Assembly (NCBI GenBank): GCA_000708835.1
Contig: DF237405.1
Location: 11,718 to 75,717 of the forward strand
Length of the DNA stretch: 64,000 nucleotides
From: Klebsormidium nitens
Lineage: Eukaryota > Plantae > Klebsormidiophyceae
Direction of reading: 5' to 3'
This document shows, piece after piece, positions 27,680-33,800 of the stretch (the first letter of the stretch is position 1; each line of letters begins with the position of its first letter). The notes beneath the pieces were generated by a model that saw nothing but the letters and a program-made list of their open reading frames with translations, was not told where the DNA came from and searched no databases. A program made the translations under genes and the position numbers.

Positions 27680-28468
27680 GCGAATTCTTTCCCTGAGTTT
27701 CTCCCTACATTACTGGTCTACACTGGAGCTCTCGTGCTTTCTTTAAGTTGCGCAATCCTGCATATCGTCATTTGTCCGCGCATTTGTGTCAGTCGCTTGG
27801 GACCAAATCGTTGTGAGCAGGCATATTTGATAACTAGGATCTGGTGCACTTTTCTATGTATGTAAAGGAGATTCGATTCTTAAGCTTTGTATCCCTTGCA
27901 AGATAGAGGCCCGGCCATGTGCTGCACCAAGCACTTGCAGGTATGCAGTCATATCCAGAAACCAGACATACCCCTTCCGTATCGCATGAAGGCATATGGA
28001 GCACGGCTCAGTAGTATTGCATCATTCATGATGTAGCTATTTAGCGGGCTTTGGCGGCCCACATCATTGAAAGCTAAAAGTGGATTAGCATGCTGATAGT
28101 TTAAGATATCGAGGATAAGGTATACAATTGCATAGCATTATGCAGCTCTAATCAAAAAAGTAAGGCAAAATGAGCGCACCTCTTCATATATATCTAATCA
28201 AATCGATCGCAATGCACTTGAGGGATTCAGAATGGCCTAACGTGCGGCAGCGAGCTCAGTCCGACTGGACTTTTGTATGAAGACGGTCTTCATACAGGCT
28301 CCGGCGACAGATGCGAAACTAGTACGGGTATTGTCTTCCAACACACTCACATACGTAACTCCTAGCAACTTCTGCAATGCTTCCCTTCTTTCTTCCGACT
28401 TGCTGTTACTTGCACACACTGCTACAATACCATCTTCTGCAGCAACTTCGCAAACAATATTTTTCAGC

Positions 28469-29939
28469 CTACTTGCCTGCATGACTCTTCTTTTTTTTCT
28501 TGGACTTGGACTTGTGGTGATCAGATCTATGCTCGTTGCCTTCTGCAGAATGAAAGGAAGGAATTGCATGAAGTCTATGCACAGACAATTGAAAAATAAT
28601 CTTTCTCATGCACAAAGAGCACACTGCCGATTATCAGCACATGGGAGAATTTAAAGCAATAGGATGCTTATACTTCTGAGGTATGCTCTGGTAGTATGCA
28701 CGCACAGAGATGTCCCACATTCAGAACTGCCACCATCGTTGAGGTTCCAATTGCCTGTTGACATCCATAGATGTTGCTGACACGAGAACTATATAAGTTG
28801 ATGCGGTTGCTTATAAGTTGATGCACTCTTGCAACCTTACCTTGACCATTGCTCCCCTTCGTTTCTTTTGGTGAGATTGCAACTGACGGCACTGGTTCAG
28901 ATGATGAAGACGGTGCAGACTCCGTTGTAGCCGCCAGCACGGGGCGTGCTCTGGTATCCAGGGCGCGGGACTGTTCTTGCTTCCCAGATGCAGGAAGCTG
29001 TACATGTACAGCTTGATCCTCTCCACTGCTTGTTCTCGCTGCAGCTGCATGAGAATTTTCCGCTTCATGCCCTGCCACTGCAGAAGGCTCCTTTGGCGTC
29101 TCCAGTGCCTTGGGTGCATCGAGGGACTGTTTCTTCGAGGGCTGCGCGACCACTTTGCCAGGTGCTTCTGTCCCCTTAGCAACAGCAGAACCATCAACTG
29201 GCTTCTCCGCAGGCTTCTTGGCTGGTGCAACTTCCAACTTCTTTGCAATGTGATCTGCTGACTTCTTCGGAGAGCTTACAGGAAGCTTCTTGGGAGACAC
29301 TACTGCGGGTTTTTTTGGGGGATCTGCGCTCACAGATATTGTGAGAGGTTGGCTCTTAGGCTTGCCCAAGGCTGGGTTTGCCGCCTTTGTTGCTGATGGT
29401 TTGGAGCTAGGAACATCTACATCTTGTGCCGTCAAGTTCCCTGACTGTTTAGCCTGCATGCTCTCCTCACCATTGCCCTGGGTTGAAAGGTTGGCTTGGG
29501 TTGGTGAAAACAGCGACCTTTTCTGATGATCAATGTCACTTTGAAAACCCGTTCCTGAGCATCTTCCCTGGTCTGGAAGAGCATCCTGATCGGATGACTC
29601 ATGCTTCTCTTCACTTTTCTTAGCCACTTCCGCACTCCGATCTTCCTCTACATGCTTGCATGCAGGATCAGATGCCTTGTCTGAAGGCAATTGAGCTCCT
29701 GATGCTGGTGTCACAACGTGCTTCTCAGTGGTGGTGCAATCAACCGGTTCCCCCTTCCCAATGCTAACCTCACTGCTTTGCCCTGGATCCACCTTCCACT
29801 GGTTATACCTTACATACAGGACATAGAGCAGGACTGGTGGGACGTAGACAGGCGAGAAGATCAATAAAGCTGGCCAAAAGATGCAGATCAGGACTCCAGC
29901 CAAAAGCCAGTGTTCTTGCATAAGTTTGACAACCTCCAT
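28469..29939 (-). CDS. Orphan protein with an N-terminal hydrophobic hairpin containing an oleosin-type proline knot, a long Lys/Pro/Ser-rich disordered region and a polybasic C-terminus
   Basis: Large exon from ATG 29939 to donor CAAG/GTAAGG near 28843. The last exon after the ctgcag acceptor near 28545 gives EGNEHRSDHHKSKSKKKKKSHAGK*. PALLIFSPVYVP fits PX5SPX3P. Confidence 0.7.
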
Positions 29940-30565
29940 CTGCACATGGCGAATCGTGAAACGTAAGCATTGGGCCTCCGTTTCTAAAGATCTTGGTGGT
30001 GTCTCAAAAGGTCTGATGCACTAAAGTCCTTTTTACATTGCCAATTTGCGAGCCAGTCTTGATTGCATCTCTCAAGAATGGATCGCGCAAGCAAGCCTCG
30101 GCAATTCACTGTTGCAAGAATGAAACATCAGAGGACCCTCACATGAAAAAGGTGGTGGGACAGGGAGGGTACATGAAAATGTCGTACAGATTGCATGCAA
30201 AGCTGCCTTCGCATGTTTAAAGGAAAGACGCCTTGGACCTCGAACAGCACGAAGGCTCACCTTTGGGCAACACACAATGGCCGCTCCTTCCAACAAGCTC
30301 TTCTGCATAGGATTTACCTAGGGAGATATTCTGGCGTTTGCACCCTCTTGTCATTGACAAAATTCGCGTCATGAAATGCAGCTCTGTGCGACATGGTGAC
30401 TCAGCATGTTGGCTGGTTGCCCGGACTGGCGCCAAACTCAAATGCATCTCCTGCATTGTCCGATCGGACGACTGGGAATCATTATCAAAGAAACACGTCA
30501 GCACATCGAAGGGCCTCGGCAGAATTTTGCAAAGGGATAAACTTTAATAGTAATAAGGAACTTAA

Positions 30566-30685
30566 GGTACACGAGTACGGGTGGGGTTAGTTTGGTGGTT
30601 AGGGTGGGTTCGGGTGCGGAGCAGGTCATTTTGTCCTTAGGGTTTTAGTGTTGGTTAAGCCGAGACATTGAGTACTTTCAGTACC
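30566..30685. mobile_element. Short non-autonomous DNA element (MITE-like), copy A of a family with a telomere-like core
   Basis: Termini GGTAC...GTACC flanked by TTAA and TAAG. The core aligns in reverse complement with 58841-58917 (about 66/77 by hand, including a 26-nt exact block gctccgcacccgaacccaccctaacc). Confidence 0.6.
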
Positions 30686-30854
30686 TAAGATCCTTGTACT
30701 ACCTACTAAAGTTTATGGTTATGAATTTTGCCCTGCGCATTGATCGCCGCTGCTGCGCAGTGCATTGCCAGGGAAGAGCTTTTAGGGTTTGCTTCAATAC
30801 GGTAGATCCACTTTGGTGCGGCACCAAAGCAAAGGTCCAAGGAGGGAAGGGGCC

Positions 30855-33800
30855 ATGGATGCTATGGGGGGCGAGGAGCGGCAGGTGCAAGTACGTTTTG
30901 TCACAAAACTTCCCGAAGAGTATAGGGTTACCAACGCATCCTTTGCTGTTCCTGCAAGATTGACCCGTTATGGACTCTCGGAGGTCATCAATAGCCTGCT
31001 AAGCACAGGTAAGCCGTCATGAAGTCCGCTTTCAATAAGGCAGAAAATCCTGCTGCAGAAACGTTGCCTGCGATGGTGTGAGGTTGAGGTCTGCCAGCAT
31101 GTTGTTCCTGGTGGCCACCACAAGCCCCCGAGCAACACCACTAATATAGTACTTGCTTGCTACTGTTTCTCAAAACAACTTCGGCCAACTCCCTGTACAG
31201 AAAAGCTGAGGCCGTTTGACTTCCTCGTTGGCGGGGAGCTGCTCAGGACCTCTCTGGAGAGCTTGCTTGTCTCCAAGAAACTTTCAGCGGTGAGTTATTG
31301 TCTTTGGTTACCGAGATGCCTAAGCCTTGACATGATGGAGAACCCGCTGCAAAACGCACATTGCTGACCACATTGCCATTCTCTGAAGAGCGATCTAAGA
31401 ATGCAACACTGATCTGGCTGCAGGAAACCACTCTAACGATCGAGTACATTCCTGCGGTTGGACTGCCCAAGCCAGTCTCAAGCCATGTCCACGACGATTG
31501 GGTCAGCGCAATCAATGGAACTTCCCCTGAGTGAGTGGGCCCTGTGGTGCACCACCGCAGCATCGGGCGCTCTTGGCATAATGTTCACCTTAAGGTCCCT
31601 TTTGAAAGATGGTAATGGTGGGGTGCAATGTTCAATTACGCTTCTTGCGGTGATTGGGTTTCTCGGTCTGTGAAGGCAGCTGAGTGGTGGTGTGCATAAA
31701 GGGGTGGTAGCGGCTTCAATCTATGGTAGATCAGAAAAGTCCTTGGTGCGCTTTGGCCTCTGAACAACTGTGTCTGACCTTGTGACTTTGGTCTGCGCAG
31801 TGTGCTCGTAAGTGGCTGTTACGATGGTGTTGCAAGGTAAGGCACTTACAAGTCTCAGATGCCAACACATATAGAGAGAGTTGTTATGCCCTATCGTTAA
31901 TTGGATGTCTTTATATTTGTCCCAGTTTGATCATGGTGCTTATGTACTTTGTTTTTCTTTTCATTGGACCATGAGACTAAATCATCTACGCATCCTGCCA
32001 GGTTATGGAGTTCGTCAGGGGAGGCTCTTACCTCATTACAGGGGCATTCCGATGCAATCACCTCCACCGCGGTCATACCACGGGCATCGGGCTCATGTGA
32101 TGTCATAACAGCATCAAAGGACAGGACACTTCGAGTGTGGCAGGTGCGTAGTACGGTATTGTGATTCTCACTCACCACTTTCCGATATTCATCATCTGGG
32201 TGAGCAGAATTTCAGTGCCTTGTCAAGAAAGTAAACGGAGGGGCAGGACAATGATGTGCACCGATCGCACAAAAAATGGCCTCAGGTTGTTGCAGTACTC
32301 CATGGCTGCAAAAGCTACACAGAACTTGAGGCCGGAAAATGTGTCACGGTTGTTTCTTCAAAGCTCACTCTCTAAGAGACAGTTTATGCTGTGCCAATGC
32401 TTGCTGCTACCACAGATCTGTCTGTCAAGCTTGCCAATTGAAGAGGATGCTGAGGGTGACCTCAACAAATTGAACAGCCAGTCCACGGTGGTCGACTCAT
32501 CTACTTGTCACGTGTCCTTTATAGGTAAAAGGAACTGATTCACAACCCTCGGGTGACCTTCATCAAGTGCTACGAGGTCATAGTGCAGCAATCCAGTCTG
32601 TGGTCGCCAGTCCGTCAGGGAATGAGGTAAGTCCACTTCAAAGCAACCGGTTGTTCTATTCTTTAGCAATTGTCAACCGTAAGCATGGCTTCCTCGTTGC
32701 TGCCATGCTTTGAAAGCGTTCCCGACGTTGAGCCCCATATCCAGCCCCCTGTTCGTCAGGGTACCCAAAACTCTTCTAGAGGTCCGTTCATCAGGTTACC
32801 AAAGTTCTTTGTCATCTGGAACGCAATGGCACTGTCAATGTTTCTCAATGATAGTTTGGCCTTGTGGCTTCGACCCTTAGGGTAGCATCCAGTCAGGGCA
32901 TACTGAATTGACCCCTTACTGGTGGTTCTGGCTGGATGTCGAGCCCTTGCGAATTCATGCGTGACAGTCTTGGCCTCATCTAATATGGTGAACCCACTTC
33001 TTGCAGGTGGCTTCGGGGTCCTGGGACACGACCATCAAGGTGTGGTCTGTTAGTAGAGACGCTGAAGATGGGGGCAGTGCGCCCAAGAGACAAAGAGTCG
33101 AGGACAGTGGGGCAGCCCCTGCCGGGGAGCAGGAGGCCAGAGAGGCGCGGGTCACGCTGGAGGGTCACTCGCAGTGCGTTTCAGCGGTGGACTGGTCTCG
33201 AGCTGACACAATCCACTCCGCGTCGTGGGACCATTCCGTTAGAACCTGGGACGTGCAAGCGGCAGTCAACACAAGCACCATTGTGAGCCCTCTGACCAGG
33301 CCTGGATGCGGTGTTGCTGGTGGTTGCAGCTTGCGTTCTAGAGATCGAGTGGGCCGAAAAATCACACCTTGCTGGAGCCTTGCTGGAGCTAACCGGCCCA
33401 TCAGAAGAATCCTCACTTCAGGAAAAATATCTTGGTTCGTTCCCATCTATAATTGATGGGATCATTGCCAGGACTTTAGTCAGCAGATAGAGAAGTGATA
33501 CAGGCATCTAAGAACTGGTGAAGCTACCATGCTGATTCGTTTTCTGTGTTGGATTGTAGGGAGCTGTCGGAGCTAACACGCTTGATTCACTTTGCAGACT
33601 GGTAGCAAAGTCATCCTGGCCCTAAGCGTGGGAGGTGAAGGCGGGGCTTTGCTGGCAACAGGGGGAGCAGACCCAGCCATTCGAATCTGGGATTCACGAG
33701 ATTCAAGTGAGCACTGGACTCGCTTTCTTTGCACATTGGTATCGAACATCAGCAGCGGTTCTCACAGCAAACCGACTGTCCTGACATGTACTACTCCTGT

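Follow-up and report, generated by a model that had tools for sequence, protein, structure and literature searches.

A lineage-restricted orphan protein of Klebsormidium nitens with an exact oleosin-type proline knot in a short N-terminal hydrophobic segment

The proline knot, P-x5-SP-x3-P, is treated as a hallmark of oleosins. An exact copy is encoded on the minus strand of a 64,000-nucleotide stretch of the Klebsormidium nitens genome (contig DF237405.1; the whole stretch that was analyzed is referred to as the window), close to the N-terminus of an otherwise orphan protein. A first-pass annotation, made from the DNA letters alone, interpreted this protein as a short-hairpin, oleosin-related anchor of lipid droplets or the ER that carries a large basic, phospho-regulated arm. 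Here, we ask whether the knot marks an oleosin, and what the remainder of the protein suggests about its role.

Gene structure and orthologs

The motif-bearing open reading frame belongs to KFL_004560120, with 100% identity to the 406-aa NCBI entry “hypothetical protein KFL_004560120,” which a literature search found named in no paper. Encoded on the minus strand, the gene comprises three exons separated by two GT..AG introns. It is expressed, and its splicing is backed by transcript contigs from 4 runs of 4 independent studies.

Relatives were sought among 5.8 billion proteins with a word-indexed search and among 1.84 billion representatives with exhaustive phmmer, and only two were recovered across both searches. 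One is P0002, an unspliced open reading frame on a Logan contig (L001) with 68% overall identity; the other is P0003, on a 52-kb JGI metagenome contig (L002), with 56% identity over the first 52 residues. The word-indexed search returned only P0001 and P0002 when queried with the K. nitens N-terminus, and P0003 alone when queried with P0003 itself. The sole addition from exhaustive phmmer was P0003, with no oleosin and no other family. When metagenomes were scanned with back-translated conserved peptides, none of the 222 pattern matches was confirmed. On L001, on L002 and in the window, the gene is arranged head-to-head with an NLE/WD40 gene (WDR12/Ytm1-like), and the genes on L001 and L002 are considered orthologs of KFL_004560120 because they share this neighbor. 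By sequence comparison, the family is thus lineage-restricted, with K. nitens and two relatives in the data searched.

Residues are numbered here from the ATG at 29939 in exon 2 (M1), which gives a protein of 390 aa, because the 16-residue extension of the deposited model is unconserved. At the extension site, L001 keeps the splice donor but lacks an ATG and is interrupted by an in-frame stop, and the start of P0003 (MDIV) corresponds to the exon-2 ATG. Absent from both orthologs, the extension was ruled out as part of the conserved protein, and the annotated N-terminus (ATG 30308) is probably either an error or a peculiarity of K. nitens. The features of the locus are as follows, in window coordinates.

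30261..30400, minus strand: exon 1, with the 5′ UTR and upstream ATGs (transcript contigs extend to 30385-30400, and their splice joins 30261 to 29939)
ATG at 30308 in exon 1, minus strand: annotated 16-codon extension MQKSLLEGAAIVCCPK of the deposited model, unconserved
29940..30260, minus strand: intron 1, GT..AG, 321 nt (junction in contigs from 4 runs of 4 studies)
28841..29939, minus strand: exon 2, with the conserved start ATG (29939-29937), the putative anchor module and the disordered linker; 81% DNA identity to L001
29787..29939, minus strand: conserved N-terminal module, residues 1-51 (MEVVKLMQEHW ... RYNQWKVD), from ortholog identity and a dN/dS of 0.135
29811..29909, minus strand: 33-residue hydrophobic segment W11-V43, WLLAGVLICIFWPALLIFSPVYVPPVLLYVLYV, from hydropathy
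29838..29873, minus strand: exact P-x5-SP-x3-P proline knot, PALLIFSPVYVP, from translation of the window
28842..29786, minus strand: disordered linker, residues 52-366, from composition and charge; dN/dS 0.47
29214..29321, minus strand: basic Pro/Lys patch, residues 207-242 (PPKK, SPKK, SPKK, PAKK), from motif positions
28543..28840, minus strand: intron 2, GT..AG, 298 nt, phase 1 (seen in contigs; position kept in L001 and L002)
28469..28542, minus strand: coding part of exon 3, with the tail EGNEHRSDHHKSKSKKKKKSHAGK and a TAG stop, conserved in L001 and L002
28472-28519, minus strand: polybasic core of the tail, in exon 3
28231..28468, minus strand: 3′ UTR (transcript contigs stop at 28231-28297)

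Several observations concern the 5′ side of the gene. Exon 1 (30261-30400, minus strand) contains at least three more upstream ATGs, in other frames or in short uORFs. Contigs at 29912-30263 read through intron 1 at a depth of 2-6, compared with 23-340 for the spliced form, and represent a minor unspliced or intron-retaining fraction. The block around the transcript start (window 30375-30443, minus strand) is 86% identical to L001:5608-5675, and a short uORF beginning MLSHHV lies in this block in both K. nitens and L001; the block is absent from L002. A divergent promoter of ~350 bp (window 30400-30860) is shared with the NLE/WD40 gene, a ribosome-biogenesis type of gene that starts on the plus strand at ATG 30856. 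Two telobox motifs, AAACCCTAA, lie on the minus strand of this promoter (30645..30637 and 30790..30782) together with degenerate telomere-like repeats, and one telobox is also found in L001. Several unrelated transcript contigs share ~45 bp of 30577-30626 at 2 mismatches and then run on into different sequence, which marks this stretch as a short dispersed repeat within the intergenic region.

To compare proteins region by region, the two orthologs were spliced in silico using the donor and acceptor sites that they conserve. Identity to K. nitens and dN/dS (K. nitens vs. L001) were as follows.

N-terminal module, residues 1-51: 86% identity to L001 and 57% to L002; dN/dS 0.135
Linker, residues 52-366: 69% identity to L001 and 15% to L002; dN/dS 0.47
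Tail, residues 367-390: 88% identity to L001 and 42% to L002, the latter from a MAFFT alignment that shifts the lysine run by one; dN/dS 0.08

These region-wise values indicate constraint at both ends of the protein and rapid evolution of the disordered spacer between them; the comparison covers three sequences from one algal lineage and has little statistical power.

The proline-kinked segment and the oleosin family

The exact knot and its placement near the center of an N-terminal hydrophobic stretch of about 33 residues, both reported in the first-pass annotation, hold up on inspection. Translation of 29838-29873 gives PALLIFSPVYVP, which is centered in the hydrophobic run W11-V43. The run is bounded by E9/H10 on one side and R44 on the other, has Kyte-Doolittle 19-residue means of up to 2.3, and measures 33 residues in the orthologs as in K. 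nitens. Four prolines interrupt it in the arrangement W-P-x5-S-P-x3-P-P. All three orthologs keep W22, P23, S29, P30, P34, and P35 unchanged, and with them the three prolines and the serine of the knot, whose conservation had been named as a check on the oleosin proposal. From the three-sequence alignment, AF2 predicts a helix at residues 2-28, a break at 29-32 (SPVY) and a second helix at 33-50, with pLDDT ~75. The segment carries R44 and K49 on its C-terminal side and a net charge of -1 on its N-terminal flank. Taken together, it looks like a proline-kinked membrane anchor under purifying selection. A cleaved signal peptide was rejected on two counts, the excessive length of the hydrophobic run and the net negative charge of the n-region.

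In form, this putative anchor falls between types, 33 hydrophobic residues being an excess for one span and insufficient for two. No solved structure matched at E<=10, and the ESM Atlas feature search gave no usable match. Shape searches of the ESM Atlas returned unrelated helical proteins only, at TM <=0.43; one oleosin cluster appeared among them at TM 0.35, a value that is not meaningful. The AF2 model, built on three sequences, and these unrelated shapes are therefore as compatible with a hairpin as with one kinked span.

If the knot is to be used as evidence of kinship, its background frequency matters. In the six-frame translation of the window (128,000 residues), a bare P-x5-SP-x3-P expression is found 8 times, compared with 3.4 expected, and only PALLIFSPVYVP among the eight has a hydrophobic context. 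The motif alone is therefore non-specific. Its frequency would also suit an ordinary single-pass signal anchor, for example of an endomembrane or the outer membrane of an organelle, that carries a disordered cytosolic scaffold and has no droplet, tether, or nuclear role, with a proline pattern that arose by chance or is merely structural. Knots inside hydrophobic segments are estimated, from the window frequency and rough assumptions, at ~0.3-3 per proteome; furthermore, the shape searches return N-terminal helices resembling signal anchors, and the family is tiny and orphan. However, 33 hydrophobic residues with four invariant central prolines are atypical of a simple span, and the strong constraint on both the anchor and the tail points to specific functions at both ends. 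We therefore regard an ordinary signal anchor as distinctly unlikely.

Oleosins are defined by a central, uninterrupted hydrophobic domain of ~72 residues and the hallmark -PX5SPX3P- knot (PMC4126676), and streptophyte algae, to which the host belongs, are their presumed origin (PMC13247531). Consistent with a relationship, no Pfam family other than Oleosin (PF01277) is reported at E<=10. The profile scores 14.2-16.9 bits for K. nitens and L001 (E 0.006-0.04), below the gathering score of 25, and the match covers only profile columns 29-56 (28 of 113), at the knot. This match is not independent evidence, because the sequence was picked by the same motif. The K. nitens knot (LLIFSPV.VP) agrees at 5 of the 8 “x” positions with what we take to be the typical oleosin knot. 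P0003, on L002, has no Oleosin match, although its motif is exact and lies in surroundings just as hydrophobic (PALLVFSPCYLPP); the additional similarity around the K. nitens knot is therefore no trait of the family. The profile search suggested at the outset thus gave a sub-threshold score for two of the three proteins and no match for the third.

Length and layout also differ from those of oleosins. The hydrophobic domain has 33 residues, under half of the ~72 that characterize oleosins (PMC4126676), with arms of ~12 and ~9 residues compared with ~30 each. The oleosin hairpin is central in a small protein of 15-26 kDa and is surrounded by amphipathic domains, whereas the K. nitens segment begins at residue 11, at the extreme N-terminus of 390 aa, and is followed by a disordered linker of ~320 residues and a polybasic tail, with no C-terminal amphipathic domain of the oleosin type. 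The word-indexed search restricted to the band of oleosin lengths (60-192 aa) found no oleosin at E<=10. Among metagenome contigs, a degenerate DNA pattern for the oleosin-type knot, written from a consensus that we presume to be typical, gave 4 matches, all by chance (stops, no hydrophobic flanks).

By these sequence comparisons KFL_004560120 is not demonstrably an oleosin, falling outside the family in length, layout, and profile score. A true relative in which the hairpin has shortened to ~33 residues, still targets lipid droplets through the knot, and is fused to a long regulatory arm would explain the exact motif in three of three orthologs, the sole Pfam match and the choice of host lineage. 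Against it stand the low score on a motif-selected sequence, the loss of the match in L002, the short hydrophobic domain, the missing amphipathic domain, the lack of any oleosin from exhaustive phmmer, the length-restricted word search or the Atlas feature search, and the ease with which the bare motif arises. Such a relative is therefore quite improbable. More improbable still is its most specific form, a minimal oleosin relative in an early-diverging streptophyte alga, with a 33-residue hairpin on ER-derived droplets and a tail that would tether the droplets to an anionic membrane. The proposal of a short-hairpin, oleosin-related anchor is thus retained for a proline-kinked anchor (dN/dS 0.135) and dropped for the oleosin family. 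The knot is probably a kink-forming element of the anchor, convergent with that of oleosins.

A structural parallel may lie among the class I or ERTOLD proteins, whose anchors are defined as two helical segments split by a kink, often with a central proline (PMC12687448). AUP1, METTL7B, and HSD17B11 have short N-terminal hydrophobic regions that enter the membrane during translation, with a role for the positive charges on their flanks (PMC12687448). The K. nitens segment resembles those of AUP1, METTL7B, HSD17B11 (steroleosin-type) and ANKRD22, and the intramembrane domain of caveolin-1, in being short (~30 residues), N-terminal, and flanked by basic residues, with a predicted proline-kinked pair of helices (PMC12687448), and, given the kink in the AF2 model, it may fit the description of a class I/ERTOLD anchor. 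It differs from this class in lacking homology and any attached enzyme or UBX/CUE-type domain, and in having four prolines in oleosin-type spacing instead of one central proline.

The disordered linker and the polybasic tail

More than 300 disordered residues were expected behind the hydrophobic segment, and the linker bears this out, with ~320 residues of low complexity, in which S, A, K, P, and E abound, and an AF2 pLDDT <50 from residue 54 onward in the modeled part. Its description as a large basic, phospho-regulated arm was overstated. The linker has a net charge of about -1, its first third being acidic and the basic patch lying in the middle, and it evolves rapidly (dN/dS 0.47).

SPKK is both a DNA-binding motif of the minor groove and a minimal CDK site. 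Repeated SPKK/PAKK motifs are real to the extent that PPKK, SPKK, SPKK, and PAKK occur at residues 207-242. Strict S/T-P-x-K sites, however, number only two, a count that composition shuffles match 18% of the time (P = 0.18), and S/T-P-x-K/R sites show no enrichment over shuffles (P 0.13-0.5). One SP[KR]K alone, the first copy at about residue 215-219, is kept in position in all three orthologs, and the other SPKK/PAKK motifs are lost even in the close relative L001 (SPKI, SVKK). What the linker keeps across orthologs is its composition, its acidic-then-basic charge pattern, and this single SP[KR]K.

The KSKSKKKKK tail noted at first is genuine and is encoded by a separate exon behind the 298-nt intron 2, with the splice seen in transcript contigs. 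Its form, HKSKSKKKKK(K)SHxxK followed directly by the stop, is conserved in three of three orthologs, and its Lys, Ser, and His codons differ synonymously among them. Judged from these sequences, the polybasic tail is a second conserved module, new in this analysis. A C-terminal dilysine ER-retrieval signal was considered and rejected, as lysines are absent from positions -3 and -4/-5.

Candidate modes of action

A conserved lysine run after a long spacer suggests, by analogy, either a membrane-binding end, as in Ist2, or a nuclear localization signal, as in Heh1/Heh2. We favor the former. The N-terminal 33-residue segment would be inserted into the ER during translation and form an anchor of two helices with a kinked break between them. 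This anchor would be either monotopic, as in the class I hairpin proteins, which pass from the ER to lipid droplets and have both termini in the cytosol, or a signal anchor of N-out/C-in orientation. In either topology, the linker of ~320 residues and the tail would be cytosolic, because the positive charges R44 and K49 flank the anchor on its C-terminal side. The anchor may stay in the ER or move to lipid droplets, although we consider its reaching droplets unlikely. The tail, HKSKSKKKKK(K)SHxxK, would act as an electrostatic module for binding an anionic surface. In its preferred version, the protein would be a tether with a logic like that of Ist2 or STIM, its anchor in one membrane and its polybasic end, across the spacer, on a membrane of acidic lipids. 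Taken whole, a proline-kinked ER or lipid-droplet anchor with a cytosolic disordered linker and a tethering polybasic tail is our tentative first choice, held with somewhat less than even confidence.

The architecture of a tether (an anchor, a disordered linker, and a conserved basic C-terminal element) is present, and its lipid binding is putative. In the yeast ER-PM tether Ist2, an ER anchor is followed by a disordered linker and a C-terminal element that binds the plasma membrane (PMC8282664). KFL_004560120 resembles Ist2 and STIM in this order of parts and in having conserved ends and a variable linker. It differs from Ist2, with which it shares no homology, in having one short segment instead of a multipass TMEM16 anchor and a bare K/S run instead of an amphipathic helix at its end.

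The KKKKK of the tail is equally a classical nuclear localization signal, which raises the prospect of a nuclear-envelope protein. With the segment as a bilayer anchor, the signal and the unfolded linker would drive import to the inner nuclear membrane by the logic of Heh1/Heh2, the basic SP[KR]K/PxKK patch would contact chromatin, and CDK phosphorylation may release the patch. In yeast, a nuclear localization signal and a disordered linker are required and sufficient for membrane proteins to accumulate at the inner nuclear membrane (PMC4695851). KFL_004560120 has a comparable set of parts, namely an anchor, a linker of ~320 residues and a cluster of lysines at the end; its two ends are conserved, and a conserved SP[KR]K lies inside a conserved basic patch. 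This resembles the basic import-type signal, long unfolded linker and membrane anchor of Heh1/Heh2 (PMC4695851), but the order along the chain is opposite, with the signal at the far C-terminus. Moreover, the Heh2 signal is high-affinity and bipartite, whereas the K. nitens lysine run is monopartite. Pfam reports no LEM, MAN1, SUN, or other nuclear-envelope domain, the conserved SP[KR]K is only one, in a linker whose S/T-P-x-K/R sites are not enriched, and the lysine run reads the same in sequence whether it is an import signal or a lipid-binding polybasic tail. A nuclear-envelope role, including the chromatin-contacting patch, is on balance unlikely, and the tether is preferred over it.

KFL_004560120 thus appears to be a lineage-restricted orphan of interesting design and putative function. 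If an exact and conserved knot indeed occurs outside the oleosin family, in a far shorter anchor, it would call for caution in annotating oleosins by motif; less probably, KFL_004560120 preserves a minimal form of the oleosin hairpin. The combination of anchor, spacer, and polybasic end is also a compact candidate for tethering membranes or for sorting to the inner nuclear membrane, in a lineage close to the root of the land-plant line.
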